This document shows positions 234 to 50,843 of a stretch of 64,000 nt of DNA, in pieces. Each line of letters opens with the position of its first letter. The first letter of the stretch is position 1. The stretch spans positions 92,380,001-92,444,000 of the forward strand of contig NC_042997.1 of NCBI RefSeq assembly GCF_006345805.1, read 5' to 3'. The position numbers were made by a program, and so were the translations under genes. Source of the stretch: Octopus sinensis (lineage: Eukaryota). Under the pieces are notes generated by a model. That model made no database searches. It was not told the DNA's origin and saw only the letters and a list, made by a program, of their open reading frames with translations.

Positions 234-265
<32 letters not shown>

Positions 266-269
266 ACAC
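234..269. repeat. (CA)n microsatellite
   Basis: Direct reading. Confidence 0.95.
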
Positions 270-7100: not shown

Positions 7101-10100
7101 AATTACTCTAAATTAATGATTCAAGTTGATGTTTAACATCATTATTCCAATTTGCTAGGGTTTTTTTTTTCTATTAAAGGGTTGATACCAGCTCTTTAAG
7201 TTGTTAAAACTTTGAATTATATAGTGTGCTCTACTTGAGTAAGGAACTATAGCTCTTCATTGTGCCTATTTACTGCACCATTTACAACATTAAGGATTGC
7301 TTCATTGCTCTTAATTCTCTGATAAATTATAAACTTTTGACCGTCAACCAATAGATCACTGTTTAATGATTTACAAATAGTAAAACTTGTATTTCTATTG
7401 CTTTAAACAATATGTCAATTTAATGATGTTTCTGTTTTAATTTCAGTACCAAAATGTAATGTTTTCTTTCATTCTTTCTCTCCATTTTAGAGATACTGAA
7501 CTTGCTGATATACCAGCAGAATTATTAAATCACATTAAAAGAAAATACCCACAGATTGTTGCTCGTCTCATTCATTTGTTGGGGCAGAGACTGCTTGGTA
7601 GTCTTCAAAGCAGATCAGGTAATGAATCATACTGATTAACAAAATGACATATTGGTGTTGTAATGTTCTGTGTGCACAAATATTGTAAGGTTCAGTTATA
7701 TTGTTTGTAATGTTAGTCTCTTTTCTGCTTCACTTATCACATCTTGCATCAAATTTTACTCATATAAAATCCTCTCCACAACACTTGTCATAGCTTACTA
7801 CTAAATAATTTTATATATTGTTTATTTGTTTGTAAGTTCAACCATTGAATGCACTCCATTAATTTGAGAGTTATAAATGTTTACTATATATGTATATGTA
7901 CTGTTTACTTGAATTCCATGTTCATGTAAAAATATTTTGCTTTGTTAGATAAAATGAAACCTAATTGCCTTGTTCAGTTATTGGGCTGTGTCAAGAAATG
8001 AAATGAAGTATTCCCTGACAAAGCCCACTGACTGAACAAGTCAATTAGGCTTTTTTTTAACTCAAACAAAGTAACATTTTTGCCTGAATTTGAAGCTCAA
8101 GTTGCTGTCAAACACATCTTCACAGCACACTCATTTGCCCACATAAAAACTGATATATTGGTAAGAAAAAAAATGTTAATTTGTTTAGAAAAGTTAACGT
8201 TTTCAATGTTCTCATTCTTATGAACCAATAAACAAATAAAAAAAAGTATGTCTATTTCATTAACACTTTAAAATGTATTTACTTTTTACAGCCCCACTGA
8301 GTATAGAGAACCGGCTCTTAGTTTCAAACCTTTCAACTGTTGCTGTTGTCCCTGTCTCACGTGATGTACCTCTTACTAATTTTGTCCTGGAACTACAACA
8401 TGCTCTCAATGCAATAGGTAAATCTTGTTTTAATATTTAGTTTCTATTATAAGGCTTGGTGCTGTGTTGTTGAACCCCTAGACCAGCTTTCATTGAGAAA
8501 ATGTATTACCATACCACTATAATATATCTAGGGCTGTTTTATCCAATATGTTCTTACTTCTTTAAAACTTTCTTTCAAACTGTAAGAACAAATTTGAGAT
8601 GAGCAATTTGGTTGCTGTATCTAGCTTGTTTGCTCAAAGACTGGGAATGACAGGAATAGTAGAGCAATGAACTAAATATCTTACAGTATTTGTTTTTGTG
8701 TCTCTACATTGATTTCAAATTCTGCTGCAATTTATTTTGTATTATATTTTTTTTTTGAGAGGTGGGGTTCCATAAATTAGTTTCCAGTAATAGTCTTGCA
8801 AGTTACATGGTGTCTTTACTAGTGCTGGTACCATGAACAAGCACCCTGAATACTCTGTAAAGGCATCCAGCTGTAGAAACCATGCTAAAGTAGACAATGG
8901 AGTATAATGCAATCTTTGGAACCATTGGATCCTGTCAAACTCTCCAACCCATGCCAATATGGAAGACAGACATTAAAAGGTGATAATGATGAATTTAGGG
9001 TTGATTTAAATGACACTTGCTTTTCTTTTCAATGTATTGGTTTAAAAAAATCAATACTTCAATGAAAATTGGTACCAGTATACCAACACACTTAATAAAC
9101 TAAGTTTATTAAAGGATTTGCTTCCTTAAACAGACTAAGAAATGAGTTTTATAAATGGAATTTATTCTTAAAATATCTCTTGTTGATAGAAATCATTTGA
9201 TTTGTGGAGCATTATATCATTTTAATTACCTGTAGGAAAATTAATTGAACATCACTGGCTTATAATTGAATCCTTTTGTATACTTGTAATGTGTAAAGCT
9301 AAAATTTTTCTTTAAGCATGAAAGATTCCTTAAGGCAGCTGTAAACAATTTCAGTGTATCTTGTATTATTAAATGAAGACAAAATCATCATCATCATTTA
9401 ATGTCTGTTGTCCATGCTGGCATGGGTTGAATGATTGACTGGGCTGGCACACTGGAAGGCTGCGCCAGGCTCTAGTGTGATTTGGCATGATTTACTCTGG
9501 CTGGATGCCCTTCCAACTGCTCTCGAGAGTGTTATGGGTGCTTTTACATGCCACTGGCATGGGTGTCATTTGTGTAACACCAATATCTGCCATGACTGCA
9601 ATTTTGTTCAGCTTGATGGGTCTTCTTCTTAAGCACGACATAATGCCAAAAGTCTTGGTCATTGCCTCCGTGAGTCCCACCACTTGAAAGGAACTCAGCC
9701 ACCTTGCCTCCGTGAAGCCCAGTGTTTGAAAGGAACTCTGTCAGACTCAATGCTCAAAAGGTACTTTGCCTTCGTGAGGCCCAACATCCAAAGGTTGATC
9801 TTTTTTTACATGCCACCATTACGGGTGCACTTGACTTGATGGGTCCTCTTAAGCAGAGTACATGGCCAAAGGTCTCGGTCATTAGATATGTTATATAATG
9901 TTATTTAGTTCATCATTTATATTGTCATTGAAGAATTCTTAATTTGTTTTCTGACCAATTATGATTTTGAAAGTAAATAACTTTGTCATCAAATCTTACA
10001 CCAGGCTTTAAATTTATTTTGTAGGTCCAACTGCTCGGATCACTAGTGAGATAGTCAGTGCAAGAATTGGTAGTTCTGGATTTAACAGGTAATTATAGAA

Positions 10101-13044
10101 CTAATATTCTAATTTCTGTATTTCTCTATGAAAGTTTTCATTGTATCTGTTTTAGAAGCTATAATTTAAAGGATTTAGTCCTACTTTTATTGAAGAAGAT
10201 TAGGACACTTATCAAAAACAATAGAGTTCTAAACAAAATTATTTATAGCATTTGGTCTCGTCCATCTAAAATTCTGTGTTGAAATCTTATCAGGGTTAAT
10301 GAAGCCTTACTGTGAGGGACCACCCTGAGATCTTATCACAACTATTTTATTTCTCTTTCCTGCCCCCACTCTCACTTCTATAATGTGAGACCCTATGTAA
10401 CTCCTCTGCAGCATGAAACCTGTTCTGTTCTGGCCTTTTCTCATTAACTAGCATAAAGCCACCTCCTTTTCTACTGTTGTCCCATTCAGTCAAAATGATC
10501 ATGCAAGCTGCATTGCAACCTCACTAGTGTTAGTGCCCTGACAAAACCTTCAATGCAATCTAAAGTGGTTGGCATTAGGCAGGGTATCTAACTGTAGAAA
10601 CAAAACCAAAACAAACAGTTGAGCATGATGCAGTCTTTGAAACCATCAGGTTCTGTCAAACCATCCAACCCATTCCAGCATGGAACATGGATGTTAAAAG
10701 ATAAGAACGATGAAAGTTGTGGTCTTATGCCAATATAAGAAGTCAATAATTTAGAATTGTGAACAAATTTTTAGAAATTGCCTTAAGTAGAGGTAACAGA
10801 ATTAAAGCTTTTAGATTTAATCATTTCATGTTAAATCAAAATAGATTTCTCTAAACTTTTCTTTAAATTGTTGACATCCAGTAATGCTCTCTAGCTCACT
10901 TCTCTTCATCTTAGTCTTTGAACCACTTTCAAGAATTCAGTTTTGGGTACTTGATTGAAGATTCTTATAAAAAAAATCAAAGGAACAAGAAAAACTTTAT
11001 AGTTTAAGAGACCATATTTGTGTCAAATTAAGGTACTTATTAGTAAAAGAGTTCACAAGGAAGTGGTTTTTCTCTTATGCAGGCGTGAATTAAGCAAGAT
11101 CTCAATATTTTGTAGTTAATGCAAACAATGGTTGCAAAATCACTTCTGTCAGTTTAACTAAGAACCAATTTCAGGTGTGCTAAATCAATTTGAATTGTTA
11201 GCAACTTTGAATTGCTCAGATGACTTGTTGACATAGTAGATATATTTTGCATGATTAAAATAGTTAATGAAGTGATTTGGCAGAATTGTTAGTACTTTGG
11301 ACAAAGTGCTTAGTGACATTTCTTCCTGCTCTTTACATTTTGAGTTCAAATTCTGCCGAAGATGACTTACCTTTCATCCTTAAGGTCAATGAAATAAGTA
11401 CCAGTTGAGTACTGGGATTGATGTAATCAAGTATTCCCCTCCTCTAAAATTGCTGGTCTTGTACCAGAATTTGAAACCAATATGGTTTTAATGTGAGAAG
11501 TTATTGATTATACAAAGATTTAAAACTGAAACTGATGGAGAAGTTTAATAACTGTTCTAAAATCTTCATTTCTCTCGAATTTATATAAAAGGCAAATTGT
11601 GTTGTTAATGCTGATAAAATATTCAAATTTCATAATAGGTGAATACTGTTAATACACATTTACTGATAAGAAAAGTTAATAGAGATGACTGAAAAAAATC
11701 CGAAGTTTTTATTTTCAGCAAATTGCATCATTTTGTGACCTTTAGTAGAAAACAAATATTAACAAGGCTCTTCTCTCTGTTTGCAGAATGACACTTCATT
11801 CTGGGGTCTCTGTTGGTCTATGGAAACCATGCATCTGCATATATATGATTAGGCCTGGGCAAGATTTTTTGAGGAATAATTATCATTATAATAGATGTGC
11901 TGTCAGGAGTTAGATGAATCTAAAATGTCTCATTAATGTTCTTTTTCTTTAAAAGAAATTAGCTGGTAATTTTGCTGTTTTATGAAATTTCAGTTTGAAT
12001 GACTTCCGTTTGTTCAGCTGGCTTGGACAACATGAAGATATTAATCGAATGGTTTTATACCAATGTGATAATACAATGACACGATGGACTAAGCATTTTG
12101 TGAGGCAAGCTGATTGTATCCTAATTGTTGGTGTTGCCACAAATGACCCCACATCATTGGGTGAAGTATGCACTAATCTTTAAAATCTTAACTTTACCCA
12201 TGCTACATAGTAAATGTAATTTACCACTATAACCTTCTCATTAAAATCGTTTTTCAATCCTATGTGTGTGTATATATATATATATATATAAGTAATCACA
12301 AATGGTTTTCTCTTTCAAGTTCAGAAGTTAAGAGCAGTTTTTAACTGGCACTGACTTCTGTTACTAGTTTCTTCACCATATGTATTGTAATTGTCAAGTA
12401 AATAATTCATCTAAACTGAATGTTGTCACTTAAAAGCTAATTGATATTCCTAACTACTTTTTTTATAACATTTATTTTGCAAAGTATTTTTTAGACTAAA
12501 TTTTTCACAAGTGCATATATGTACATGAATTATCTTATTTTATTGGAAAGAAAAAGGCTTTTTTTTGTTAGAGTAACATATTTAGTAATTAATGAAAACT
12601 AGGAAATATTTTGTAGCACATTAAATTGTACCTTTATTTAATTTAACTAAACAATATTTGCACATCAGGTTTTCAACAGTTAAATCCCCATTTGCATGTA
12701 TGTGGGTGTTAAATATAAGCTATAGCACAATTTTTCTTTAGATGCTATGCACTCTGTTTGTTACATTGCAACAAAATGTCTTTAGTTATTTTCCAAGTAC
12801 AGTATCCTATTATTGCCATTTATATATATTGGGCCATCCCATAAGTAATACAGTTTTTTTATACTTCTTTTATTTTTCAAAATTAAAATAAATGAAATTC
12901 TTTTTTAATCTAAAATATACGCTCCTTAATTTTCTACAATACTCTTCCTTCTATCTGGAAGACGCTTCCAAAATTCACTTGTCCGTGATGAAAAATACTC
13001 CTCCAGTACTGTTCTGACCTTGTCCACAGAATTCATGGTTATTC

Positions 13045-19100: not shown

Positions 19101-22100
19101 GTGGTAATTTGAGAACAGTGTAAAATGAAATATAGGATCATGGAATATATAAAAAACATTAGGTTGGACATTTTGCAAAATTAACAAATAATAGGTGGAC
19201 TTGTGCAGTTGTCAAGTGGTATCCAAGAGATCAGAAGACCTCTAAGACAATAGGAAAAGGAGATAATCAAGGAAAGAATGAAAGCATTGTGACCTGTGAT
19301 GTTTATGAATATCTGGTCAAGGAAAAGAAAATTATACTTTAAAATTTAAGTTTTAACTCCACAAGAAGCACTATCATTTTTGTCAATTTCAGCTAGATTT
19401 TCTTGGAAAATTTTTGTTAGTAAATTGCTTCATAGTCTCTAAAGCTCTATCAATGATCCATTTACAATATTGAAATTAGAGGTTATATATTTTAGGGTCT
19501 AAATCTTTTGAGCAGTAAGCCTACAAAATTATTGGATTGCTCCCACTTGAAATACTAACTGAACACTTTTCCATCAATTATCTCTACATGTCTAGACAGA
19601 GCTAATTGGGATGGCACAATAATCGTAGTTTATATTTTATTTATCACAATATCTCATTTTATATAGTTTTGTCTTTCTTTTTTAGCTTTCTCTATTCCTC
19701 TTCTATTTCCTATATATCTTTTTGAAACCTTTTAACAGGAAATGACTTCGTTATGGAAGAAAGTTCTTGATCTTACCTATCCTGTTACGTCCATGTTCAC
19801 AGGTAAGACCACTTAATACGAGTCATTTTATTTGTTGATGTTTTTTAAATAAAGTCTGACAGAAGCATGACTTGATGGTGAGGAAGGAATAGTTTACACG
19901 GGAAGAAAATTTAAGTTAAGAACCAATTAAAATTTTAAGATACTCTCCAGGTATCTCTATGTATATACCTTAGTTTTCAGCATTTTTATACTTGTCATTA
20001 CTGCTAATTAAAGTAATTAAAATAAGGTTCATATATATGCAAACACTTTGTAAAATGCGAATTTTTGCACTACTATTGACTTTTTCATAATTCTATATCC
20101 CAACACTTTCTCAGGTAAATAATAAATGTAAAATATTAAACTTATTTCTAGTTGGTTTATTTACCTCACACCATCCATATATAAATTAAACAACCACGGA
20201 GACATCATACAACCTTGTCTTAACCCCACCTTCACATCAAATCACTCACTTATTTTGCTACCCATTTTATTTTACGTTTATTTTATTATAATTAATTCAC
20301 TACATTACATACACTTCCCAGTGTAGATATAATATAGTTTCTTACTATTCTTTTGTAGGATGTGCCTTTAATAAAAGTTTGGAAAATGTATTTAAAGATC
20401 GTCAAATTGAAGATCTTTGGATACCCTACTTTTGTGTCACCACTGACATTTGCTCTTCTTCAATGAGAGTACATACCACAGGTAAGGAAAACATTATTTG
20501 GTCTACTAATGTCTCTGAAATTAATGTGATACTTCATAATACATGCTCTCTTAACTTTAAACTTTATTTCAAGAAATAACTAGAATAACTAGATGATATA
20601 TTACTGACTACAATTAAATGTAACTGCAGCCATTATTTATAACTTAAACAAAATATACCTTAAATTTACAAGAATTTCAGCTTTTGTGGAGAAAAAAATC
20701 AATGCAGATTATGAAATCCAGTTTTGTTCTATTTGATTGCATCAGCAACATCAATAGTTTAATGTCCATTTTTTTTTATGCTGGCAGGTTTTATGAAAGC
20801 TTTTAGAAAAACTTTTATCTTTGATGCTCTTGAATTTGATATTAAGTTGACTTAAGAGGCAGAGCAGGCAAAATGCTTAGTGGCTTTTCATTCATCTTTA
20901 CATTCTGAGTTCAAATTCTGCCAAGGCTGACTTTGCCTTTCATCCTTTTGGGGTTGATAAGAAAAGTACCAGTGGAGCACTAGGGTTGAAGTAATCAACT
21001 TACCTCCACCCCTGAAATTGCTGGCCTTGTGCCAAAATTTGAAACTAATATTAAGTTGACTTAGTTTAATGTGTTTGACTTTTGATGACATGGCCAGAAT
21101 ACAAACTTCACTATAGTTATTGCACTTGACATACAGGCAAGTCACAATACTTGTTTCTCTCTGTCTAGATAAATGATGAATGAACACATTGGGTGATGTA
21201 GTCCTGTACTATGAACTCTTAAAGGATAGGATGGTACAACTAAAATACCTTTGATCGTATGCCTACTGGATTAAGGCTAACCTAATCCATAGTGTTGAAT
21301 AATAATGGACAAAGAAATTTATATAACATAATCAAAAATGCTAACTAGGTAAAAATAGATTTAAAACAAAGTAAAATATGCTAAATTGTCATTAGTCTTC
21401 GTTAGACCAGCTTTTCTATGTTGTTAAGTATCTTTATTTGTTTTAATGCATTCTACTTTCACTCTCTTTTATATTTACCTATCAGTCATTCATTTATCTT
21501 TTAAATTTTGATGTGAGAGATTGTTACATTTTCTACTTATAGGTTCTCTTTGGCGCTATGTTCGAGCCAGTATGTCTTTATCTGGATACCTTCCACCTCT
21601 TTGTGATCCAATTGATGGCCATCTATTATTAGATGGTGGATATGTTAATAACCTTCCAGGTACGTGGCTTTCTATAAGCTTTTAATCCTTTAAAGTTTTC
21701 TGTAACTGAAGTATTTGATAAATTCTTAGTAAATTGGCTTAGAATATACAAGGTATTATTAGTTTAACTGGAAAAGTTAAACTAATGGTTAAGAAGTTCA
21801 CTTTGTAACCATATGCTTTTGGATTCAGTCTCAATGCATAACAGCGTGAGTAAGTGTCTTTTACTATAGCCTTGGACCAACCAGTGACTTATAAGTGAAT
21901 TTGAGAGACAGAAATAGAAGGGAGCCCATTGTATATATGTGACGTGTGTGTATAAATGTGTATGAAAGTTATTTCACATTTGTCACAGCTTGAGCAAAAC
22001 AATGATAATATTAAAATTCCTTGTTGATATTAGGAATGGTATTTTGTAATCTCTTACTTGAAAATGCAGGTAAGGGTTTACAACAGGAAGAATAGCCAGC

Positions 22101-25100
22101 TGTAAAATCCTGTCTCATATAATTCCTATTCTAACCCATGATAGCTTGGGAAAACTGATGTTAAAACAAATTTCAGTTCAACTTTGCACTTTATAGAATA
22201 GTTTCACTTATTTTTAGTGATATACTACTGATAGACACAAAACCTAAAGGGGTCATAGAAAAAGTTTTTAAATGATGGTATTTGTTGCTAACATAGCAAT
22301 TAGGAATTTCATTAGAATTTTAACTCCTTTGTAAATACCGCATTCTTTGATGTCATCTTCTAGTTCTTAATATTTGGAATATTTATCATAATGAATATTA
22401 TTAACAGATACTCTTACTGTAGTGATTCTGTACATGTTTTTGAATATCATTACCTAAATTGAATAAATTAATCAAACTGTTATTGGATACTGTGTGAGTC
22501 TGTTCATTGTCTTGGGTGCTTGGATGGAGTGGTTTAGATTGTTGTATGTGTATCTATTGTAAACTGTCATCCTAGATAAGAGGAAAATAGTCTAGTTGTT
22601 TTTATTGATTTTGTCAGAAAGTAACAGCATATGATTATGACTAATACATTTATTTTATTTTTAATTTTCTTGTTTTCTGTTTTTTTTTTTCCAGCTGATG
22701 TGATGCGTGCTAAAGGTGCTCAAACAATATTTGCTGTTGATGTAGGCAGTCAAACTGAAGATGAACTCACAAATTATGGGGATGAACTCTCAGGTTGGTG
22801 GCTTCTCTGGAACCGCTGGAATCCATGGGCAAAAAATGTGAAGGTATGATTATATTTTCTTTGACTTATCCCCTCTCTATACTGGTATTTCCTATCAACT
22901 ACACCTCCACCTTTGTTTCTCACTCACTACAGTCATCTCTACTCCCATCTCTAATCATCTATTACTCTTGCCCTTCACTCTTGGGAAACTACTCCCTCTC
23001 ACCCCTAATCCACTGTCTGTATCCTTAATTATATACATCTTGTATTTTGAGATGCTGTGGCACCACATCATCACCAACTCCACCTTCTTTCCGGCTACTT
23101 CCACCCACCCAGTAGCCATGTATCTCCTCTTTTGCAGGACACTTGTGCTTTCCTTTCTATCATACTTTAGTCTTTCAATACCTGATATAAAACCAATGTC
23201 ACCCACCTCAAATACTCCCAACTACTTAGTCAAGGGAGCTTTTTGTTTTCCTTGTTCCAGTCTTGCAAGTTACTTGGTAACCTCACTAGTGCTGGTAGCA
23301 CAAAAAAAGCACTCAATAACACTGTAAGGTGGTTGGCATTAGGAAGGGCATCCAGCTGTAGAAACCATACCGAAGCTGACCTTGGAGCTTGATGTGGCCC
23401 TAGAGCTCACTGGATCCTGCAAAACTATCTAACTCATGCCAGCATGGAAAACAAACATTAAATGAGGATGATAAGAGGATTATATCTAAGCTCAATAAAC
23501 CACCAAACTACATATCAATTTGTAATTCAGTTTTCTATCATTGAGTTTCTCTTTTTTCTCTTTTGTTACATAAGTGTAATGTAGGTATTTCAAAATATCT
23601 CATGGAGTGAGTGTGGCCTGCATAGTTATGGGCTGCCCTTTTTTTGGAAAAGCATAGCACCTGATTAGCCATCCTGTCAAAGATATGGCAAAGTCATGGG
23701 ATTGCAGCATGGTAGTTATGAAGAGCTCAACTAAACCAACTGTGCATCTTACGTGGATGCTGAGTGCAGGAATTCTAATAGATCAATGGCCAGAATCACC
23801 AAGCTCTATCAAGAGAACAGCGGCAATGCATCTATAGGGGCGGTACCCATGGCTGTGTAATCAGCTAATAAAAGATCCACTATGGATCAAACTCCTAATT
23901 CAAATTAATAATAATGAAACTGGATGTCATAGGAATCTGTAAAAGTGGCAGAGAGGTGGGGAACCCCACAGAAGTGTAGGTGTTTAATCCTTTAACCAAA
24001 AACAGTATACAACACCAAGGATTAGCTACAAAGTATTGACACTCCAGCTGAAATTTTGACATTTTATTTGGTTAAAATTGATTATATGAGTATATAAAAC
24101 CAAACCAAGGATTTAAAAAAATCCTTCCCCTTCAAGTGTTGAATGAATTTTGTTGCTGGTAGATTTCATGAATGGGTTGAGCTAAATGTTTAATGTTTGT
24201 GTTCATATTCCAGGTACCAGACATGAATGAAATCCAGTCTCGGCTAGCATATGTATCGTGTGTGAGACAACTTGAAATGGTGAAAAATAGTGACTACTGT
24301 GAATATGTGAGACCACCAATCGACAAATTCAAAACATTACAATTCGGAAGCTTTGATGAAATATATGCAAGTTTATTTAATTATTTAAAAAAAATAATTC
24401 ATTTTTATTTGAAAACATATTATTATATCTAAATAGTGAGAAATCCCAAAAGGGTCTGTGGCATAACATTATTTGACAGGGTACTTAGCTTGGAGATAAG
24501 GTCTCTGTAGGTTAAGTCACTACTTCTCTGCATTGAGAGGTCACACAACAAACGTGATTAGAATGTCACAGGAAAGAATCATAAGACAAATTCTTCAAGC
24601 TTAACCAATTGGCAGGAGACCTAGGGGTATACGATGGTTGGGTAGTCACCATACTCTCGGTTGGTCATGCTTGGGAATGAAAAAAATACATTAAAAGTAT
24701 AAGGGATCAAATTATCGATAAAAAAGAAAACCCATAACTATCTCACTAAGAAAATAAAGAAAATATAATGGTGTGGCATTAAGCAGCAGAAGATGGTGGG
24801 CGAGGGAATAACAGGTGGTCACACCTGAACAAATGGTGTGTTAAGCTATGCCTCATGGACATGATTGCAAAGGTGTTGCCACAAAAAATGGTCAGTGATA
24901 CTTACTGCTGTAACCTGCCCACCTCACAGGGCTCTGTTTCAAAACAATCAAATCTGTTTCAAAACAAATATAAACCTCATTTTAGTTTCCATTCTTTTGA
25001 TTTTGTATTTATTTTATAAACTGTTACTATATTACAAGAATCATTAATTTTTACAACTATAATAAAACTGCAAGAAGGTCTCACATTTACAGAATTATTA

Positions 25101-28100
25101 GAGTTCTAATCTTTCTGTGACTTCTTTCATGGTATCTAGTAGTAGATAGCAGATGGTATTCAGTAGTAGATATTGTCCTATGATGGACTTGTCCCATGAT
25201 GCACTTGTGTCCTGTTTAGGGCAGAGTGTTGTAATCTCAGTATACCATGCAAACCAGATTAAGTGTTCAGATTGTAAATGTACATCTTTTGACTCTATGT
25301 AATATGATTGATAATAAAACAAAAGTATACATGACACTATATGCAAGGTAGTATGGCTACACCACTGTGGATTTTTCCTTTTTTAAAAAATTTTTTTTAG
25401 AGTACAATTGTTTTTATTAACCTAGTTTTTACAGGAATCTTTAACTATAGTAGAAAATAACAATCACTTCAAATGTTATGTTATATGTCTGATTTTTTTC
25501 CTCTCTCTCTGAAATATTGTCTTGTAGGAAGTTGGTTACCATCATGCTAAAACACTGTTCAGTGGCTGGATCAAAGGAGGAATTTTAGAAGATCTTTTCA
25601 AGGAAAAATCAGAAGAAAGAAAGTTCAAAAAGAAAGCATCGCCATTATTTGTAAGAATATCATTGAAAGATTTACTGTTTTTCTAATAGTTGCCATTTCT
25701 GTACATTTTTCTTAGCTTTGTATTGTGTGTGTATGTGTATATTTACATACATACGCACACACATAATGTGAAGTTTATTGACTTGTTACAAAACTGGAAT
25801 TAGCAAATTAGTAAAATATTTTGTGTGTAGTGTCTTTTGTTTTTTTTTTATCCTTTTGTTGAGATATTTGAATTACTATTTTAAACATACCAATAAATTA
25901 ACACCCTAAACTTACTTGTCATTTTGACTGACTTGCTTTGTCTTCGTATTCTCCTCCTCACTGGTCTTCTACTAGTCTCTTTTTGTTTCCTTTCTTCTTA
26001 ACAATTGATCTTAAATGTTGAAACTGAATATTAACATAATGTAGTCTTATATATCCATTCAGTGTTGACTATCAGAAATAAAGAGTACTCAATACCATAG
26101 TAGAGATCAATATTTTGTTCAAATCATTGCTTCTCCGAGTTTTGCCCGTGGATGTACAGGGTCTTCAGCTTGGAGGAATGGGCTATGACCATGGCCTTGG
26201 AAGACCCTCTGAGACCAGAGATATTGTTGCAGTTAATGTTCTTCTTGAATAACTACAAGTTCATGATTGTTGTAAGGAAAATTCAGAGGGAGGACAGTCT
26301 GAGAAGGAAGGATTGAAAAGAAGTGAGGAAGGGGAAAGAGACAGTATGGGCAATGAAGAAATGTGAATGAATTTGGTAGGTCTGATAGAAGTGGCATGAG
26401 ATCAACCACCTACAAGGAACAGAGGTTGTAGTAGTGATGGCAGAAGATACAAAATGAGGAAATAGCTTGTCTGTGGTCCAGGGGTTGTGAGCAAGTTCAT
26501 GCCAATCAGTCAAGTGACCCAAGTAACCTTTTTTTTTTTGCATGAGGTTCATGATGGTATTTACAACTGCTCAATTCTAAACACTAGTCCTGGCACTCTT
26601 GGTCTTCCAGAAGGACTGGGAGATGTGATGATTTGCTGCACTTGATAAGATGCATCAAGCACATACAGGCTTGTCCTTCAGGTGCTGGTGCTACTTAAAA
26701 AGCACCCATGTTGGTGCTGCATTAATGCACCTATGCTGGTACTATGTAAATGCATCTGTGCCAGTGGCACATAAAAACATCCAGCACCTCTAAGTGGTTG
26801 GTGTTAGGAAGGGCATCCAGCTGTAGAAACCATGCTACAACACACAGTTCGAGTCTGGACAGCTCCCTGCTAGCTAGCACCATGTCAAACTATCCTACCC
26901 ATGCCAGCATGGAAAGAGGATGCTAAACTATTATAATGACGATGAAACATTTTTGAAACTTGTGTGGCTTTGTTGCTAGCTGTTTTGGTAATAGTGCAAC
27001 TGCTACAGTTGATGTTGATGTACACAATTGAATCACAAGAGCTTGAGGAAGTATAAATGTATGCTGGGTAACCGAGATATTATAGTGTTTGTAGTACAGT
27101 ATAGTGTTGTTAATTTTGAAATTTTTATATTCTTGTGTCACCTATTTAAGATGTAAGCTTTTATTGAACATATACAAACCATTCACGCTGTGTCCATTGT
27201 ATATTTATAAGTATGAGGTTTAGTGCTTTGTACAAGGTCCCTATTTAAAGGTAGTAAAGACTTTGAGTAATATTTGTTTGTTTTAGGAATGACATAGAAA
27301 CCTCCTCATTATTGTTATTATTTTGAAAGTCTTCTGTTGCTCTGTTTAAGATGTAACAGGTTAATTTGTTTTAATTAAATGACTGTAGTCAGTTAATTTC
27401 AGTGGTTTTGATTGACTGTGAGTCATCTGGCAGAATTTGCTTTACACCAGAAAACAGTTATGATATTCTATCCTACAGATTGGGCGGGATTCTTACTTTT
27501 TGGGTCAAATTCTTCCAATCTTAGAATTCAAACCAATCAAATTCAGCTGCTATAAAATAGTTATATGAATTAACCTTTTGGGGTTTTCTGAATACTTTTT
27601 TCATAGCAACTAATTATACAGGAAATAATGTTTTTCTTAGTGTTGCTGTTTCATCCTTTTATATAAATACATCTTTGTGTTTAATACTAGCATTAGTATT
27701 ATGATTGCGAAAGTGTTAAATCTGGTGTATTGTTCAGATAATTAGTATTACCTATTTGTTTATTGCATTCTTAAACATTAAAGTCTACATGATATCAGAT
27801 ATATGTAGTAATTACACACCCTCCCACACACACACTATTTTTATTCTGAAATTTTTGTACTCTTTAGCAGGCTGATATGAGCCTTTTACAAGGCAGGAAG
27901 TAAAGTGGTGATCCTAAAATTACAGGCCAAGGATATGTATCTACTCCATTCCAACTCCTAGTAAGGTTATTGATGCTAATGCTTCAGCTAGCTATTATAT
28001 ATTCATATAATATATACACACAAAAGTCCTTATTAGATCTTGTATTTTTGGATAAAACTATAAACCCTTTTCAGCTTTTTGCAGCTTTAAAAAAATCATA

Positions 28101-31100
28101 TAACAATATGCACTTCTAAATCTTTTTATTCAATTTGTCAACAAGCAGATTTTGTTTTTTTAAATGTCTGACAAATATCTTGCATTTAACTATTTATGGG
28201 ATACATAAAAATTGATTTCTTTTCCTTGCATGAACATTCCTACCATAGCTTATTTCAGCTGTCAGTTATATTCCAGTTGGTATTGGTTAATAATGAGCAT
28301 AACTTCTGTTTTATGAGTTTTTGAAAATCATTTAAGCTTGGGTAACTTATAAAACCATTTGAGCATGTTATTTGAACCATAGAGCTTGTTATGAAGAAAT
28401 ATTGTGAATATTTTCTTTCTATTCTCCAACAGAATATAAGTAAATGATTAGAAATTGGGTGATGGGGCAAACCGTTGATCATGTCAACCCTATTACTTGA
28501 CAGGTACATGACTTCCAAGTCATCTTCTCTTGAGACATGAAGGGTTTTAGAGAGGTGGGAAAATGTTAGTTATGCTATCCTTTCTTATTCACTGTATAAA
28601 TTGAAATAAGCTAACCACAACTAGTAAATGAAATCTGGTCATAGAGTTGATTTACCAGAAACTTATTTACTCTAGAGTAATTGTAAATGTTTACTAAACC
28701 TCAAAAAGCTTCAAAGATTAGTTTAGCTCCAGTTTTATGGTCTTAAAGCAGATAGTGATCGAATATACTTAATAAAGTATTTGTGTTAATCATAACATTT
28801 CCACATAATCTGATAGCTATTTCTGATAGATAGGTAAAAGATAAAGAATTAAGTGTACTCCAAAATCACAAGAAGCCTACAACTTTCAAAATGGCTAATG
28901 AAAGCTATATCCACTTAACTATTTCTCTACAACTATAAGTCTTCTGTGCACATTGTCTCTTTTATGTACCGATTCTGTGTGTCTTTAAACACCATCATTA
29001 CCAAATTTAGCAATGTAAATTAGAAGTTAGGCTTTAGCTGTGTTCCTTGACTCCCACTTGGCAGCTATATTACTTATATTGTTAATGAAATTGAAAAGGA
29101 TACAAATCTTATACCTCTTAGCATTGTTCCTTTATAAAGCTCCAATTTTACTGTTTGGTTTAGAATTGATCCTGGAGAATACATTGTTAAATTCTATTGT
29201 TCTGCATTCCAATTTTACATTTTGCTTTAGCTTTTTTACAAAGTATATTTTCTTTCATATACACATATGATGTTATATTGTGTTATTCAGTGTCCAGTTT
29301 AATATTGGTTTGCTACAGTTTATATTCTTATTAATCTACATTTATAATTCCTTATTTTCTGCTTTCACCATATGGCAATGGCCTTTATATTTCTTCATTG
29401 TATTATATCTTGATATCCTTAGATTTGGTATGTGAAATGTATCTGAAGTTAATCATAAATCATTAGCCTTTTTTTTTTTTTCCTTATTTGTGAAATATTT
29501 AGTTATAAAAATGGAATGCATTCTACAAGAGGTACCTTATTTTCATAACTTTGAACTTTTATCATTGATTAAATAATTTTGTTCACTCTTATCCTGTCAT
29601 CCAGTGAAAGAATGTCAGAATGAATGATTGTGGCAACAGAGAAAACACATTTATATTGAAGCAATGGCAAACAACAATCATTTATTTATCTTTACATCTG
29701 TTTTTAAATGAACCCAGTAATTATAATGTTCATTGAACTTTATGGATTTTTTTAGGGCAGGAACAATGTCCAAGATCTTTTCAGGCCTTCTTTGACACTG
29801 ACCAGATTCTATAAAAATAATTGTCTATTGTGTTTTATGAATTTATCACATTCCATTTGAATAGTTACACAAATGATCCACAATGGATAATACAGTAAAA
29901 AGCATTAAAGAGAAAAATAGTGCTCTGTCTGTACTAGAGATTTTTTATTCAATTTTGCTCTATTCTTTTCTTAGCCATCAATGCCTACTGTGGCTAATTT
30001 CACTGATCTTGCTGAATTGGTCAGCAAGATAGAAGATCATGCTGTTAACTATAGTTCTGAGAGTGAAGGTAAGTATATTATCTTTTATTTATATATAGTT
30101 TTACATGCATTTTTTTTTTATTTTGAGAATAAATCTGGTGATAGGTTGTACAAATTTTGAATATATTATAGTTACTGGTAACTGGGTAAGCTATTGCAAA
30201 CTCAGCAATATGTTAAACTTTGGACTATTAGTCTAGTCATTGGCTGTACTGAAAACTTTTAACTTCTTTAACCTCATGACCTTGTTGTTAGTCCAATGTT
30301 TTATATTCAGGAACAAATATGAAAAACATTCCTGAACACTCAGTATTTTCCTTTTGTACTTTGATTTCGATGTTTTCTTTTGACAATGGCAACCAACTTA
30401 GCTGTAACTCCAGTTTGGTTTTCTGTGATTATTTTGTGGAAACTGTTACAGTATGTAAAGCAACTATATTCTTAAGATAAATGTATTATTAAGGTAGAAG
30501 GGGTAGACTCAGGAAGACATGGACCTAGGTGGTGAAATATGATCTTCAATTGTTGTGCCTCACAAAAGCAATGACATGTGACCGAGACTTCTGGTGATTT
30601 GCTGTACCTGAGAAAATCTGTCAAGCTAAGTGAATTGTGGTCATTGCCATTGACATGTGCTGGTGACATGTAAAATACCCAGTACACTCTTTAAAGTGGC
30701 TGGTGTTAGGAAGAGTAGCTAGCTGTAGAAACCAAGCCAAACAGATGACTGGAGCTTGGTGCAGCTCTCCAGCTTACCAGTCCTAGTCACACTGTCTAAC
30801 CCATGCCAGCATGGAAAACAGATGTTAAATGATCACACACACACACACACAGCCTTCTCTCAGTTTACATCTACCAAATCCATTCACAAAACTTTAGGCA
30901 TCCTCAGTTTTAAATAGAAGTCACTCAAGGTGCCACACAGTGAAACTGAACCTGAAATCACTGGTTGTGGAGTGAACTTCTCAATACAGCCATGCCTGCT
31001 CTCAAATAATGTAGGAGTGGCTGTGTGGTAAGTAGCTTGCTTATGAACCACATGGATCTGGGTTCAGTCCCACTGCGTGGCACCTTGGGCAAGTGTCTTC

Positions 31101-32561
31101 TACTGTAGCGTCAGGCCGACCAAAGCCTTGTGAGTGGATTTGGTAGAAATCAGTGCCTGAAAAACCACTGAAATGTGGCTGTTATATTGCTACTGGACAT
31201 CTTCCACTGAAGAGACTGAGCAGTTTGAAATCACATGATCTGGCAGTTCTGCTCGTAGCAGATGATTCTTGTTTGACAGTGATATAAATATAAATGCTTT
31301 TATATACCATTCACTTGTATGAGAGATCCACTCATGGTAAATAATGCAGAATTTTGTGTTCTAATATAACATCAACGTTAAGTTGGACATAAAGATTGCC
31401 TTTTGGCATTTGTACTACTTCTGTTGCTATCAATTATTTTTTAATAAGTCTACTGGATCTATGTGACATTGGTGCCTGAAACAACACTGAAATTTCAGAT
31501 ACCATTGATAGCGAGATTTAGCTGTTATGTTGCTACTGGATGTCTACCACTGAGGAGACTAGGTAGGTTGAAATCATGTGCTCTGTCAGTTCTTATACCC
31601 ATAGCAGACGATTCTTGCCTGCCAACAATATGCTTGCTTTTATGCACCATACATCCATATGAGAGGTCCTCTCAAAATAATATAGTATTCAGTGTTCTAG
31701 CAAAATATCTGTTAAATTTGGACATATGTATAATGTATGTATATGTCGTAGTAATAATTTGTTAAATTGTTTAATTTTTCCTACAATAGAGGAAGTAATT
31801 CATGAAGAAGAGTTTGATGATAGGCACAATTCTCCTGGCTCAACCTCATCAGAAGCTGAACCTTTACCTGAAGAAGAATTAGTGACAAAACCAAATGTAA
31901 GTTGACTTTGTTTTCCCTATTGAAAAATTACATAATTTTTTTTTAATGATTTTAGCTCTGTTATAACTTTATAATGTAGATATCTCAGAGATATTTGAGT
32001 AGTCAGCAGATTTAGACATTGAAATTGGAAAATAAATAAATAGATAAAAAAAATAAAGAAGAAAAAAGAGAGAGAAATTATATAAGCTTAATTAGAATCT
32101 GTAATGATATGGATTGAATTTCCTGAGCTTAGTGATTGAGATGACTGCCTGTCAAATTATATTGACATTGCTTTAAATGTAAAATAGAGGATTCAGAAAA
32201 AAGAAACATCATTTTCAACAGCATCTTCTAGTGGAATTAGAATTGTCAAATAGTAAATACAGACAGCTTACAAAGTGAAATAAGTTAGTTAGCTGTGAGG
32301 TCTGATTTCATGCAAGACTCTCCATCAGAACAATAAGAAATTATTAGTAAAATTAAATAATATGGAGCATTTATGGTTATTTTCCTTTATTCATGTTTAA
32401 AATATGTTCATTTTGATTGCAAAAGTTACGGTAACATTGTCAGTGTGTTGCATGTATTTGATTTGTTTTAATAATCATCAATTTGTGGTACTCTTATTTT
32501 CTCTCCCCAGAATCCAGTAAGGCAAAGAACTTCACATACAAAGAAAAAGTCTTCCACTTAA
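1077..32561 (+). CDS. PNPLA6/7: Spliced gene, 3' portion: neuropathy target esterase / swiss cheese (patatin-like phospholipase, PNPLA6/7 family); 21 coding exons, 2523 nt including stop, 5'-incomplete
   Basis: The joined exons give an uninterrupted 840-aa frame that tracks remembered human PNPLA6/7 motif by motif ([95 protein letters not shown]). All acceptors are AG, all donors are GT except one GC, and phases match at every junction. Confidence 0.97.
1848..1922 (+). CDS. PNPLA6/7: PNPLA exon 2 ([25 protein letters not shown])
   Basis: ttttag|GAT ... GAG|gttagt; 75 nt, phase 0/0. Confidence 0.92.
2311..3600 (-). mobile_element. 5'-truncated, degenerate RTE-clade LINE: ORF end, 3' UTR with internal tandem repeats, (GAT)n tail
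   Basis: Minus-strand fragments [62 protein letters not shown]. The UTR carries several related gactggctcccgtgctggtggcatgtaaaaagcac units and ends in gatgatg. Confidence 0.85.
3983..4116 (+). CDS. PNPLA6/7: PNPLA exon 3 ([44 protein letters not shown])
   Basis: tttcag|ACA ... TC|gtatgt; 134 nt, phase 0/2. Confidence 0.95.
4498..4712 (+). mobile_element. RTE 3'-UTR tail copy (family A); further copies at about 1-130(-), 4725-4900(-), 8815-8992(+), 9385-9870(-), 10505-10712(+), 13870-13968(+), 23285-23475(+), 26620-26945(+), 30465-30832(+), 61675-61755(-)
   Basis: Shared core ttaggaagggcatccagctgtagaaac...ccaacccatgccagcatggaa...ttaaa(tgat)n, matching the tail of the 2311-3600 LINE. Confidence 0.85.
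5200..5331 (+). CDS. PNPLA6/7: PNPLA exon 4 ([43 protein letters not shown])
   Basis: tttcag|A ... AG|gtaaaa; 132 nt, phase 2/2. Confidence 0.96.
5498..6345 (-). mobile_element. Young 5'-truncated RTE-type LINE with an uninterrupted RT C-terminal ORF (5508-6362 in the ORF track)
   Basis: [35 protein letters not shown] and WRNMV motifs with no stops; stop TGA is the start of a (TGA)n tail; flanked on both sides by (CA)n. Confidence 0.92.
6924..7097 (+). CDS. PNPLA6/7: PNPLA exon 5 ([20 protein letters not shown]...[27 protein letters not shown]), cNMP-binding repeat
   Basis: cattag|G ... AG|gtaaat; 174 nt, phase 2/2. Confidence 0.96.
7491..7618 (+). CDS. PNPLA6/7: PNPLA exon 6 ([42 protein letters not shown])
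   Basis: ttttag|A ... G|gtaatg; 128 nt, phase 2/1. Confidence 0.95.
8292..8417 (+). CDS. PNPLA6/7: PNPLA exon 7 ([41 protein letters not shown])
   Basis: ttacag|CC ... G|gtaaat; 126 nt, phase 1/1. Confidence 0.95.
10025..10088 (+). CDS. PNPLA6/7: PNPLA exon 8 ([21 protein letters not shown])
   Basis: ttgtag|GT ... AG|gtaatt; 64 nt, phase 1/2. Confidence 0.93.
11994..12165 (+). CDS. PNPLA6/7: PNPLA exon 9 ([25 protein letters not shown]...[21 protein letters not shown])
   Basis: tttcag|T ... GAA|gtatgc; 172 nt, phase 2/0. Confidence 0.96.
12829..13045 (-). mobile_element. Mariner 3'-end fragment
   Basis: TA-flanked end TTGGGCCATCCCATAAGTAA; minus translation [30 protein letters not shown] resembles a mariner transposase C-terminus. 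Confidence 0.6.
13048..13103. repeat. (TA)n microsatellite
   Basis: Direct reading; it ends about 67 nt upstream of exon 10. Confidence 0.95.
13171..13353 (+). CDS. PNPLA6/7: PNPLA exon 10 ([20 protein letters not shown]...[29 protein letters not shown])
   Basis: cttcag|GTT ... ACA|gtaagt; 183 nt, phase 0/0. Confidence 0.96.
14980..15098 (+). CDS. PNPLA6/7: PNPLA exon 11 ([39 protein letters not shown]), patatin oxyanion loop
   Basis: tttcag|TTA ... CG|gtaaga; 119 nt, phase 0/2. Confidence 0.97.
17363..17519 (+). CDS. PNPLA6/7: PNPLA exon 12 ([36 protein letters not shown]...AREWSN), catalytic Ser motif GTSIG
   Basis: gtttag|T ... AAT|gtaagt; 157 nt, phase 2/0. Confidence 0.97.
18490..19320 (+). 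mobile_element. Old, decayed RTE-like LINE RT fragment
   Basis: [18 protein letters not shown] (RT GVxQGD motif), followed by degenerate RT and thumb sequence with many stops and frameshifts. Confidence 0.7.
19739..19802 (+). CDS. PNPLA6/7: PNPLA exon 13 ([21 protein letters not shown])
   Basis: taacag|GAA ... G|gtaaga; 64 nt, phase 0/1. Confidence 0.96.
20359..20481 (+). CDS. PNPLA6/7: PNPLA exon 14 ([40 protein letters not shown])
   Basis: ttgtag|GA ... G|gtaagg; 123 nt, phase 1/1. Confidence 0.97.
21543..21659 (+). CDS. PNPLA6/7: PNPLA exon 15 ([38 protein letters not shown]), catalytic Asp motif DGG
   Basis: ttatag|GT ... G|gtacgt; 117 nt, phase 1/1. Confidence 0.97.
22695..22843 (+). 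CDS. PNPLA6/7: PNPLA exon 16 ([19 protein letters not shown]...[18 protein letters not shown])
   Basis: ttccag|CT ... AAG|gtatga; 149 nt, phase 1/0. Confidence 0.97.
24214..24366 (+). CDS. PNPLA6/7: PNPLA exon 17 ([21 protein letters not shown]...FGSFDEIY), ends at a GC donor
   Basis: ttccag|GTA ... TAT|gcaagt; 153 nt, phase 0/0; joins EVGY to match the conserved FDxIYxVGY. Confidence 0.94.
25528..25650 (+). CDS. PNPLA6/7: PNPLA exon 18 ([41 protein letters not shown])
   Basis: ttgtag|GAA ... TTT|gtaaga; 123 nt, phase 0/0. Confidence 0.93.
27871..27960 (+). other. Candidate alternative (poison/truncating) cassette exon of the PNPLA gene, [29 protein letters not shown]
   Basis: Acceptor atttttgtactctttagcag, donor CTA|gtaagg, 90 nt, phase 0/0 between phase-0 exons; single in-frame TAA at 27901-27903. 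Confidence 0.5.
29975..30068 (+). CDS. PNPLA6/7: PNPLA exon 19 ([31 protein letters not shown])
   Basis: tcttag|CCA ... G|gtaagt; 94 nt, phase 0/1; conserved FTDLAE motif. Confidence 0.93.
31013..31147 (+). mobile_element. tRNA-head SINE family B; other copies at about 270-380(+), 13550-13860(+), 21810-21960(+), 30853-30997(-), 33385-33660(+), 34910-35090(-), 50930-51140(-), 51975-52280(+), 56991-57414(-, full length), 57560-57760(-)
   Basis: Head ggctgtgtggtaagtagcttgc...gggttcagtcccactgcgtggcaccttgggcaagtgtcttc with A/B-box-like motifs, repeated many times. Confidence 0.85.
31790..31896 (+). CDS. PNPLA6/7: PNPLA exon 20 (acidic tail [36 protein letters not shown])
   Basis: caatag|AG ... 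AAT|gtaagt; 107 nt, phase 1/0; acidic Ser/Pro-rich tail like the vertebrate NTE C-terminus. Confidence 0.85.
32511..32561 (+). CDS. PNPLA6/7: PNPLA terminal coding exon ([16 protein letters not shown])
   Basis: Strong acceptor ttttctctccccag|AAT; phase 0; TAA at 32559-32561; VRQR echoes the LRQR of vertebrate NTE tails. Confidence 0.85.
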   Translation, partial: NPVRQRTSHTKKKSST

Positions 32562-41500: not shown

Positions 41501-43254
41501 ATACTTACAATCAGAGGTTGTGATACAGTTGTCCTGACTGTTTTTTATCTCTTCACTATGTGTTTTCATTTAGTGCTATAAAAGCAACAATTAATTACCA
41601 GTTCTATGAACCTGTGAAGTTCATAGTAAGATTAACTCTATTATAGATTATCAGCCACATGCAAAATTTTATCTTTCCTCGTCCACAGTGGTCCTCGGTT
41701 ATTTTGGCTCAAACATTCCCATTTGATTTTGTAAAATCAAGCCCCTTCCCTGTCCCCTCAACATCACATTGCACTTATACAAGTATACTACTTTTGGCAT
41801 CTTTATTTTAAGGAAATATTTGTTGCTTATTAAGGTGCCATAAGAACAATAATGGTAAATTCTAATTTATATAAATTTTAATTGGGTTGGAGAAAATCAC
41901 ATCTTAATATAAATCTGAAGAAAGACGGTGAGCTGGCAGAATTAACACACCGGTCTTTATGTGCTGGATTCAAATGCTACTGGAGTTGACTTGACCTTTC
42001 ATCCTTTTGAAGTTATTAAATAAGCAGTAGTTGAGCACTGGGATTGATTTAATCAACTTAGCTCTTCCCCTGAACTTTCTGGCCTTGTGCCAAAATTTGA
42101 AACCAATATAAACCTGAAGTAATCAGAGTATATCTAGAGAATATGCTCAACTTGTGGGAGTGTTAAAACTTTAAGCAAGTGGAAAATAATAGTGATACCA
42201 TATGAAGTACTGTTGTGACAGAGGATGTGGTAGCAAACCCCTTTATCTGTAAATATGGGAAAATAACTTATGCAAAACAATATTCTTCACAGAAATGAAA
42301 TTGTAAAATAGCATTTTGAGATCAATTTAGAAATGATTATGAAAATTGTACAATGAATGGCAAAAACAGAAAAGATGTTTTCCTTCAAATATGCAGTTAT
42401 GTCTTGATGTCTGCTAACCATAATAGTGTCCCCTTAAGTTCCACAGTCAGTTATGTTAGTAGAATTTATTTTTTTTATCCAGAAAAACTTCTACAATTTT
42501 AATGTTAAAAAAACCCCTTGCAATTTGTTGGTGTTAACAGAACAAATAACTCTACAGCACTCTTGATAGGGAGCATAATGCCCATGTACTCAAAGTAATA
42601 ACTCATTAGCCCTCAGAATAGTTTCAGCAATTTGCAGAATAAACTGTTTCTCTTTTTGGAGTGTATTTCATATCAAGAGACATTTCACCTTTCATGTAAC
42701 AGTGTAATTACTGATTAGGATACGTCTGATTATCACCATAAGATTGAGAAACAATAGACAGCATTTCTGAAAAAATGATTCACCAAAGCTCTGTGACTTT
42801 CCCAACTTCAGTATGAATCTAGTTCTCAAATTTCCCTGATTTAAAAATTTTTTTAAAAATTCCTAATGTATTTAACCTGTTTCTGAATTTGTTTGTTTGT
42901 TTGTTTGTTAAATCCTAGAAGTATGGTCTTTGAACATTTATCACAGCTGTTTATACAGATGATCTTTCATAGTCTTATTGAAAACTTTGTACTGGCAAAG
43001 TAAACTTAGAGGTAATAGAGGGTCTTATGGGAACAGGGCTCATAACATAAATGATAGAAAAATTGAACCTTTTTTCTCATTATTAGATGCCATTTTAGGG
43101 ATAGAAGTTTTCAAATTAAAAATTACATTCAAGCAATCTGATTACTAGCATTGCTGTTTTGCACTTAATTTCAAATATCTATATATATATATATTACATC
43201 CTTACATCCTATATAAACAAACATAAGCTTGTCTTTTTAGCAGTATTGAAATGT

Positions 43255-45857: not shown

Positions 45858-46018
45858 CTTGTTGACATTGTGCTTTACTAATGAATTTTGTTATTGTCAT
45901 ATCTTGGTTGGGAGATGTCATAGCAGACATAATTGCCAACCATGAATAATTAATTTAACTTAGAAATATTGTAGGGAAATTACGTGTATACACAGCCATT
46001 GCATCGAACATCTCTTAA

Positions 46019-46236
46019 CCCTTTGACATTCAGATTTCTTTGTTAAATGTATTGCTTATTTATTCACATTGTTATATGTTAATCAGGTATTATCTTGTAG
46101 CTTTGAGGTTTCAGTGGTGTGTTTGTATAATTTTAGAATGACATGGTAGTGTAGGTGTTAGTTTGGATCTGGTCAGTTTTAACATAAAGCAGGTAGAATA
46201 TTTGGGCAGGATATGGCTGGATTAAATGCTCAAGGC
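46019..46236 (-). mobile_element. TTAA-flanked MITE, inverted copy of 45221-45434
   Basis: TTAA|CCCTTTG ... CAAGGC|TTAA; the reverse complement of its end (catttaatccagccatatcctgcccaaatattctac) matches the start of the first copy. Confidence 0.65.
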
Positions 46237-46499
46237 TTAAGCCTAGCCTCTCTTTAGTAGAAAAAATTACAAACTATCCTATAATAAATTCAACTGGATC
46301 AACTATCTTAATTAGCCTACCTATTAAAATAAGTAGGCTATCATTATCAAAAGTTGTTGATATAGAAATGTTAAATGATCAACAAATTGGATACAGTATG
46401 TCCTAATTGCTACAGTCTACTTTTTAAATAATCAAACTTTGTCATTTAGCAGGACTTCTACTTCTCAAATGTTTTTCAACTATTGCTCCTTTCCTTTAT

Positions 46500-48170
46500 T
46501 GCAATGCCTCCTTGCTACTATTTTTTTTATATACCCAGGCCTATTTCCCATTATTTTAGGAGGGGGTGGCCACAACAAGACACACACCAGGCATTCCATT
46601 CATTTCCCAGCTCAGTGCAACCCCCAATATCAGCAGCGGGGCCCAATAGCATATACTGGTTTACCCCAACCGCTTCATGCTGGTTCCGTACCCTTTTGAG
46701 CATCATCAGATTCATTCATCTGTTCACAAATACTCTCCAAACTTTCCTGTCATTTATAAACTCTCTTGCCTCTCTCATTCCAACACCTCTAACCACCAAA
46801 GCTTTCCTCACTCCATCCATCCACACAAACTGAGGTCTATCTCTGGTTCTACTGCATACCACTTCTGCCTTCATCATCCTCCTTACTATCCACTCCTCAT
46901 CCATCCTCTCCATGTGGCCAAACCCCCTCAACATTTGTCTATCCATTTTGGTTGTTAGTTTTTCTCTCATTCCTGCTCACCGTTGGTTCCTCCTCATTCC
47001 TTATCCTTGTCCATCCATGTCACACCAACCGTAGCCCTCAGACATCTCATCTCGCCTTCTTTCCGCCTCTCTCGGCCCTCATGTCTCTGTACCATATAAC
47101 ATTGTTGGCACAATCATACCCATGTACACGCCTCTTTTTGCTTTCATACTCAACCTTTTATCTCTCAGCATACCTTTCACAACTCCAATTATCTTACTCT
47201 CCTCCCTCACTCTGTATCCCACATCCTCAGTCACCCCCCCCATCCACCATCATATGCGATCCCTGATACTTAAAAACACTCACCTCTAACATCTCACCAT
47301 TTATACTCACATTCATCCTACCAGCCATTCCATCTCTCGAACATTTCATCACCTTACTCTTAGCTACATTCACTTTCAGTTTCCTCCTCTCACACACTCT
47401 TCCAAACTCTACCACCAGTTTCCTCAGTTGCTCTTCTGAATCCGCCACCAGTGCTGTAACATCAGCAAAAATGGACTCACCTTCCATTTCTCCCCATTTT
47501 CTCACTAAAATATACTACCTATCTCCTTTGTACATCCTCACTTCCCTTCAACAAATTTCTATTTACATCCTTCACCCTTTCTTCCCTTCCTCCAACCACC
47601 TTCCTTACCCTCTGTACCTCTTTCTAAAACATCTTTTTATTTCTTACAAAATGCTCACTTAACTTTTCCTGAACCTTTCACTCGCCTCCCACTTCGCTAC
47701 CCTCACCACTCTCTTTACCCTCCTCTTCACTTCTCTGTAGTGATCATAAGCTTCTCCATCTCTTTTCTGAACCACTCTTCAAAGGCCCTTTTCTTCTCTG
47801 CCACCACATCCCTTTCCTGCTCATTCCACCACTCACTACATTTCCTCACACCCATTCCAACCACTCGCGTACCACATACCTCAGAAACACAACTCATTAC
47901 TGTCTCTCTAAAAGCCTCTCACTTCTCCACATCTCCCACCTCCCGTTTCTTAACCTGTTCATATTCATCTCTCAGTTTCTCTACATACTCCTCTCTCCTA
48001 TCCAGTTCACTCACCTTCACAACCGCTCTCCTCCATGTCACTCGTTTATAATTCCATTTTGAGCATACCTGCAACTTACTCTGTACTAAGAAGTGATCTG
48101 ACACTTCTCCACCTTCACCTCTCATTACATGCACATCCACCAACCTTTCTACCACTCTCTTATCAATTGG
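46500..48170 (-). mobile_element. Degenerate RTE-clade LINE with an internal deletion
   Basis: APE endonuclease end VSDHFLVQSKL, then FADVTALVADSEEQL..LKVNVAKSKVM (RT), then MLRGFGHMERMDEE..RDRPQFVWMDGV (thumb and C-terminus). RT motifs upstream of FADD are missing. Confidence 0.88.
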
Positions 48171-50619: not shown

Positions 50620-50843
50620 TATTTCTTTACTACCCACAAGGGGCTAAACACAGAGAGGACAAACACACGGATTAAGTCGATTATATCGACCCCAGTGCGT
50701 AACTGGTACTTATTTAATCGACCCCGAAAGGATGAAAGGCAAAGTCAACCTCGGCGGAGTTTGAACTCAGAACGTAACGGCAGACGAAATACGGCTACGC
50801 ATTTCGCCCAGCGTGCTAACGTTTCTGCCAGCTCGCCGCCTTA
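50620..50843 (-). mobile_element. tRNA-head SINE family C (Meta-domain-like core), full-length copy with 12-bp target-site duplication; other copies at about 11270-11485, 20855-21050, 37790-37975, 41920-42110, 55540-55660, 55805-56020, 56705-56905, 62195-62410, 62430-63196, 63660-63730
   Basis: GTCACCAGTACC at 50608-50619 and 50844-50855 flanks aaggcggcgagctggcagaaacgttagc...ctgagttcaaa...gactttgcctttcatcctttcggggtcgat. The Meta-domain resemblance is from memory. Confidence 0.88.

Follow-up and report, generated by a model that had tools for sequence, protein, structure and literature searches.

An exon-shaped, stop-carrying cassette in a long intron of the octopus NTE/PNPLA6 gene, read most readily as a pseudoexon

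Results

A candidate cassette within an octopus NTE gene

The DNA analyzed here (hereafter, the window) is a 64,000-nucleotide stretch of the Octopus sinensis genome (contig NC_042997.1, positions 92,380,001 to 92,444,000). Its plus strand carries most of a gene for neuropathy target esterase (NTE/PNPLA6; sws in the fly). Stop-free stretches bearing cyclic-nucleotide-binding and patatin motifs extend from ~1 kb to 31.9 kb, and their translations match NTE proteins of molluscs, arthropods, and vertebrates. We delimited 17 NTE exons by their AG/GT boundaries; those from 11994-12165 through 31790-31905 concatenate into a single clean frame that ends in ...KPNVS and a stop codon. NTE is a neuronal lysophospholipase whose dosage matters, its loss leading to neurodegeneration in flies, mice, and people.

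Some details of this gene are worth recording in their own right. The intron after exon 24214-24366 begins with a GC donor (TAT/GCAAGT, at 24367-24372), and the frame into the exon at 25528 is kept only with this GC-donor boundary at 24367. A further NTE exon, absent from the gene model, lies on the plus strand at ~10022-10086 (ends approximate), between 8417 and 11994; its translation matches vertebrate ...GPTLLLTSDIIRARLGSSALD.

Within the long intron between two constitutive exons of the gene (Table 1), an original prediction had singled out a 90-nt, exon-shaped cassette interrupted by a single in-frame TAA and had proposed that it may serve as a poison exon, a truncating isoform, or an exon gated by RNA editing. 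The sequence facts on which that proposal was built are all present in the letters, namely the TAG and CAG acceptors, the 90-nt body, the one TAA, and the CTA/GTAAGG donor. The proposed phase 0/0 fit is likewise sound, since the flanking NTE exons are real and 25650 ends, and 29975 starts, in phase 0. Depending on whether the TAG or the CAG acceptor is taken, the cassette would start at 27868 or 27871.

The description of the acceptor region held in part. The motif TAGCAG at 27865-27870 fits the NAGNAG pattern of tandem acceptors, but the upstream TAG is weak (3.2 bits, against 8.1 bits for the CAG), which leaves the tandem nominal, and the motif is relevant only if the cassette is used. The polypyrimidine tract also exists, but its pyrimidine content of 64% places it at the low end of real tracts (59-91%) and is equalled by 18% of intronic AGs. 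Alternative boundaries that would avoid the stop were considered and rejected: if the donor-like GT at 27900 were used, the exon would be 29 (or 32) nt long and would shift the frame, and the acceptor-like AG at 27924-27925 gives a length of 35 nt, which shifts it as well.

A (CA)n run lies at ~27817-27835 on the plus strand, some 35 nt ahead of the cassette acceptor, and CA repeats are frequent across the window, where they translate as 'THTHTH'. CA repeats in mammals can bind hnRNP L and influence neighboring splice sites.

Table 1. Coordinates of the candidate cassette, the surrounding NTE gene features, and repeat copies in the window
Feature	Position	Strand	Description
Upstream constitutive NTE exon	25528..25650	+	ends in phase 0, ...PLF; donor TTT/GTAAGA, score 5.5
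Host intron	25651..29974	+	4,324 nt, phase 0; A+T-rich
Acceptor region	27836..27870	+	T-rich tract interrupted by GAAA and GTA, then TAG 27865-27867 and CAG 27868-27870
Candidate cassette body	27871..27960	+	90 nt, 30 codons; most likely a pseudoexon
Single in-frame TAA	27901..27903	+	overlaps donor-like GAA/GTAAAG (GT 27900-27901, 5.7 bits)
Donor-like GTAAGG after CTA	27961..27966	+	GT 27961-27962; 7.6 bits, the median of real donors
Downstream constitutive NTE exon	29975..30068	+	starts in phase 0, ends in phase 1; acceptor cttag, strong, 11.2 bits
Last coding exon	31790..31905	+	acidic tail; stop TGA 31903-31905
Copies of the ~160-nt repeat	26756-26934, 4507-4669, 2312-2490(-), 30672-30829, 23289-23450, 10563-10715, 8859-8964, 9411-9559(-)		
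Dispersed copies of the second repeat family	50616-50826, 56718-56884, 55854-55971(-), 20867-21033(-), 11304-11465(-), 41922-42091(-)		

Comparable splice-site pairs are frequent in NTE introns

Splice sites were scored with position weight matrices trained on the real sites of the NTE gene (17 acceptors and 16 GT donors), the real sites themselves being scored leave-one-out. By this measure, which reports match to consensus only, the CAG acceptor (8.1 bits) and the donor (7.6 bits) of the cassette fall mid-range among the left-out real NTE sites. The flanking acceptor at 29975 is stronger than that of the cassette, at 11.2 versus 8.1 bits.

Decoys were counted as AG..GT pairs 40-250 nt apart, within 25.7 kb of NTE introns, in which both sites score at least as high as those of the cassette. 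Five such pairs were observed, two of them with a length divisible by three (3n), and dinucleotide-shuffled introns examined at equal thresholds yielded 2.2 pairs, 0.72 of 3n length. The probability of at least one pair of in-frame length is 0.10 in the host intron alone. When the features cited in the original prediction are written as a rule (YAG after a Y-rich tract, with a GTAAG donor), they return 28 pairs at 11 donors, 9 of which are of 3n length. As for the reading frame, 42% of intronic 30-codon windows contain at most one stop; of the five best splice-site pairs, the cassette interrupts its frame least often, with one stop against 2-7 in the others. The presence of a TAA in frame moreover deprives length and phase of the feature that would give them meaning. 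We conclude that the exon shape of the cassette, its phase and length included, is not beyond chance and is supplied by the long, T-rich intron itself.

The same intron holds a second decoy, at 28433-28503 on the plus strand. It is 71 nt long, a frame-shifting length, and carries two in-frame stops; its acceptor (9.3 bits) and donor (8.1 bits) both exceed those of the cassette.

The cassette had also been described as having protein-like codons on both sides of its stop, and here we found a modest but real signal. Its mean exon-versus-intron codon log-odds is 0.235, close to the 0.253 ± 0.165 of real 90-nt coding tiles, and intronic windows with at most one stop have a mean of -0.134. This value ranks in the top 3.6% of intronic windows, or the top 5.1% when these are G+C-matched. 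Frame contrast, measured as the proposed frame against its two alternatives, falls within the top 2.3% of intronic windows. Codon, frame, and combined ranks alike are post hoc, the candidate having been picked for its protein-like look. G+C content also rises between the two splice sites and not around them, to 0.44 and 0.38 from flanking values of 0.20-0.36, a pattern shared with real exons.

When acceptor, donor, and coding scores are combined, the cassette reaches 22.5, against a median of 22.6 for left-out real exons, and ranks 15th of 1,492 intronic pairs. The pairs that outscore it cluster at about five other loci, most of which are long and richer in G+C and some of which are transposon-derived; counted by locus, about six intronic sites equal or exceed the cassette in combined splice and coding score. 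Such ranks would suit a good decoy as well as a plausible minor exon, and they do not demonstrate an exon.

The intron position is shared with a relative, and no relative compared has the cassette

The skip form of the gene, in which 25650 is joined to 29975, is co-linear with every NTE relative compared, whether gastropod, vertebrate, or other invertebrate. In the gastropod Batillaria (P0044), residues 429-464 align by tblastn to exon 25528..25650 and residues 466-485 to the downstream exon, with nothing between. The spacing between the GY and FTDLAE anchors is 42-43 aa in 11 matches; the octopus protein would have 45 in the skip form and 75 with the cassette included. Four sequences from spliced transcripts (L001, P0121, P0124, and P0125) have 40-51 residues between the anchors and no cassette-like segment.

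Genomic comparison was possible with three Logan contigs (L016-L018; source runs SRR14865049, SRR14865046, and SRR6063433; L016 span 1-3051), which carry the NTE of an invertebrate about as distant as the gastropods. Their orthologous phase-0 intron measures 194 nt (L016 1317-1510) or 165 nt (L018 1119-1283) and has no exon inside. Judging from these alignments, the intron position appears to be old and the cassette does not, at the distances compared (gastropod, vertebrate, other invertebrate).

NTE introns in these contigs are very short, about 165-330 nt, and their positions agree with those of the window for five consecutive exons. The donor orthologous to the octopus GC donor at 24367 is an ordinary GTAAGT, at the same position, in L016-L018.

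When 1.84 billion representative proteins were scanned with phmmer, using a query that joined the upstream exon, the cassette, and the two downstream exons, 10 matches emerged, 9 of them confined to the upstream exon; two of the matches led on to contigs L016-L018. The tenth, P0123, spans the cassette. Its four repeats each align weakly (~30% identity), no Pfam family in it passes the cut-off, and we set this repeat protein aside as a repeat-inflated chance match. A word-index search found no cassette-bearing proteins or transcripts, and is itself a weak search that also missed the known positives P0044 and P0121. A 26-mer taken from the cassette had no exact match among metagenome contigs, and a scan for related loci returned distant NTE genes only. 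Nor did we find literature that deals with the splicing of NTE, or with poison exons, in cephalopods.

Two further origins for the interval were considered. Derivation from a repeat or transposon was rejected, as the window contains no second copy of the cassette and the known repeat copies lie elsewhere. A search for structured RNA or a snoRNA in the intron found no Rfam family at threshold anywhere in the window.

Discussion

We lean toward the view that the cassette is an intronic pseudoexon, and we infer that it goes unused or is included only at noise level. Under this explanation, acceptor-like and donor-like sites would have come to lie 90 nt apart by happenstance in a long, A+T-rich NTE intron; the normal mRNA would be spliced straight from 25650 to 29975, and the cassette would be ignored or included as splicing noise only. 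We favor it because equally good decoys are common and because the compared orthologues contain no insert. The cassette has much in common with the pseudoexons of long metazoan introns: exon-spaced splice-like sites, the lack of an open reading frame or of any orthologous counterpart, and the presence of several equally good examples in its own gene. It differs from most of them in that its scores sit at the median of real exons and its composition is exon-like, which makes it a better decoy than most. These properties are also what counts against the pseudoexon explanation: splice and combined scores at the median of real exons, composition in the top 2-5%, and a bump in G+C. To these may be added its low number of in-frame stops relative to the other best pairs and its not belonging to any repeat family of the window. 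On present evidence, the long NTE intron offers several convincing decoys, of which the cassette is one.

The poison, truncating, and editing-gated readings all require the cassette to be spliced in. Less likely, in our judgment, is that it is a genuine alternative cassette whose premature stop either lowers NTE output through nonsense-mediated decay (NMD) or yields an NTE without its last 69 residues. This proposal is mechanistically coherent, because the splice signals, which are mid-range for the NTE gene, reach a combined score equal to that of the median real exon and because the geometry of the stop meets the mammalian NMD rule of more than 50-55 nt: 57 nt separate the TAA from the cassette's own junction and 151 nt from the final one. 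That rule is a mammalian one and is not known to apply in molluscs. On inclusion, the protein would end at the TAA with loss of the 69-residue FTDLAE segment and acidic tail, a computed figure that replaces the earlier estimate of ~80 residues, and the transcript would likely be an NMD substrate.

The confinement of exon-like G+C and k-mer content to the interval also speaks for a genuine alternative cassette. Against it stand the roughly six equally scoring decoy loci in NTE introns and the lack of any counterpart in the compared orthologues, including one relative whose intron at this position is just 165-194 nt long. A poison exon, moreover, needs neither 3n length nor codon-like content, so that these features are not specific support for one. 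The cassette resembles the poison exons of SR-protein genes in its placement between constitutive exons and in that its stop would precede a later junction by more than 50 nt. Classical poison exons are, in contrast, defined by their observed inclusion and by stabilization when NMD is blocked, and they are often extremely conserved; conservation of the candidate cassette is absent at the distances compared.

There is precedent within the gene family in mouse, where Pnpla6 contains a TDP-43-repressed cryptic exon with low basal inclusion; the study that describes it states that the location and the sequence of such exons vary from one species to another (PMC12297563). The mouse exon and the octopus cassette are alike in gene family and in intronic location, and the cassette, like the mouse exon, is probably skipped as a rule. 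TDP-43 binds UG repeats, whereas the RNA next to the cassette acceptor carries a (CA)n repeat, and no homology between the two is implied. If true, a regulated poison exon or a truncated NTE isoform in a cephalopod would be real but conventional gene regulation; nothing seen here is new in kind.

We consider it improbable that the cassette is, or was until recently, a normal coding exon contributing 30 residues to the linker ahead of FTDLAE. The TAA would then reflect a mistake in assembly or sequencing, a polymorphism in the sequenced animal, or a disabling mutation of recent date. A 3n length, a phase of 0/0, and exactly one stop accord with this idea, as do a codon log-odds (0.235) near that of real coding tiles (0.253) and a frame contrast in the top 2.3%, and the insertion point falls in a poorly conserved linker that varies from 42 to 51 aa among relatives. 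The TAA at 27901-27903 nevertheless stands in the sole sequence at hand, so that the interval is not open in the phase of its neighbors. No relative has an insert resembling the peptide, the sole library match over the cassette (P0123) was judged spurious, and the statistics just cited are post hoc, for a candidate chosen by its protein-like look.

Last and least credible is an editing-gated exon, in which ADAR would turn both As of the UAA to inosine (read as UGG, Trp) and thereby license a 30-residue insert in neural NTE; we regard this as highly improbable. The conversion of UAA to UGG is chemically possible, and the first A of the UAA has the 5' U that ADAR favors in its neighbor preference. 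Stop-loss events from UAG to UGG are included in coleoid editomes and allowed for in studies of them (PMC8382921), and fungal editing opens premature stops (PMC4817773). Against it, the fold of the 290 nt around the TAA is ordinary (z of -0.44, with 66 of 200 shuffles doing at least as well), and the 25 longest inverted repeats of the intron all leave 27901-27903 uncovered. A single RNA molecule would have to be edited twice, and inclusion of the cassette is itself only a candidate event. The resemblance to known stop-loss A-to-I recoding (coleoid UAG to UGG; Fusarium PUK1) is that of an in-frame stop editable to Trp in principle; the UAA of the window differs in needing a double edit, without supporting RNA structure, and in lying in a candidate exon rather than an expressed open reading frame. 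If the cassette were spliced in and edited in neurons, what would otherwise be a poison exon that destroys the transcript would instead contribute 30 coding residues to the NTE linker; cephalopod RNA editing would then control which isoform is made instead of changing one amino acid, a new use of editing. The editing reading finds no support in our observations.

Other features of the window

Two families of repeats are scattered through the window (Table 1). The first, an interspersed family of ~160 nt with copies 70-79% alike, lies mostly in NTE introns; its copy at 26756-26934 shares an intron with the cassette, about 940 nt upstream of it. The second comprises about four tandem copies of a ~185-nt unit, 78-85% alike, at 62483-63173, together with dispersed copies up to 91% alike, some of which lie in NTE introns.

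An antisense open reading frame at 5508-6362 on the minus strand (284 aa), within an NTE intron, weakly matches reverse transcriptase (PF00078, 27.7 bits versus a cut-off of 29.6) and is probably what is left of a retroelement. The decoy with the highest combined score (5792-6015) falls within it. Downstream of the NTE gene, the open reading frame at 51192-51563 on the minus strand matches the Tc3-type transposase helix-turn-helix (HTH) domain (PF01498, 40.3 bits versus a cut-off of 31.5), and by this match it looks like a Tc1/mariner fragment. The interval 46001-48000 shows strong strand asymmetry (GC skew -0.51, G+C 0.41), and all three plus-strand frames there give long, stop-free, low-complexity translations rich in S, P, L, T, and H.
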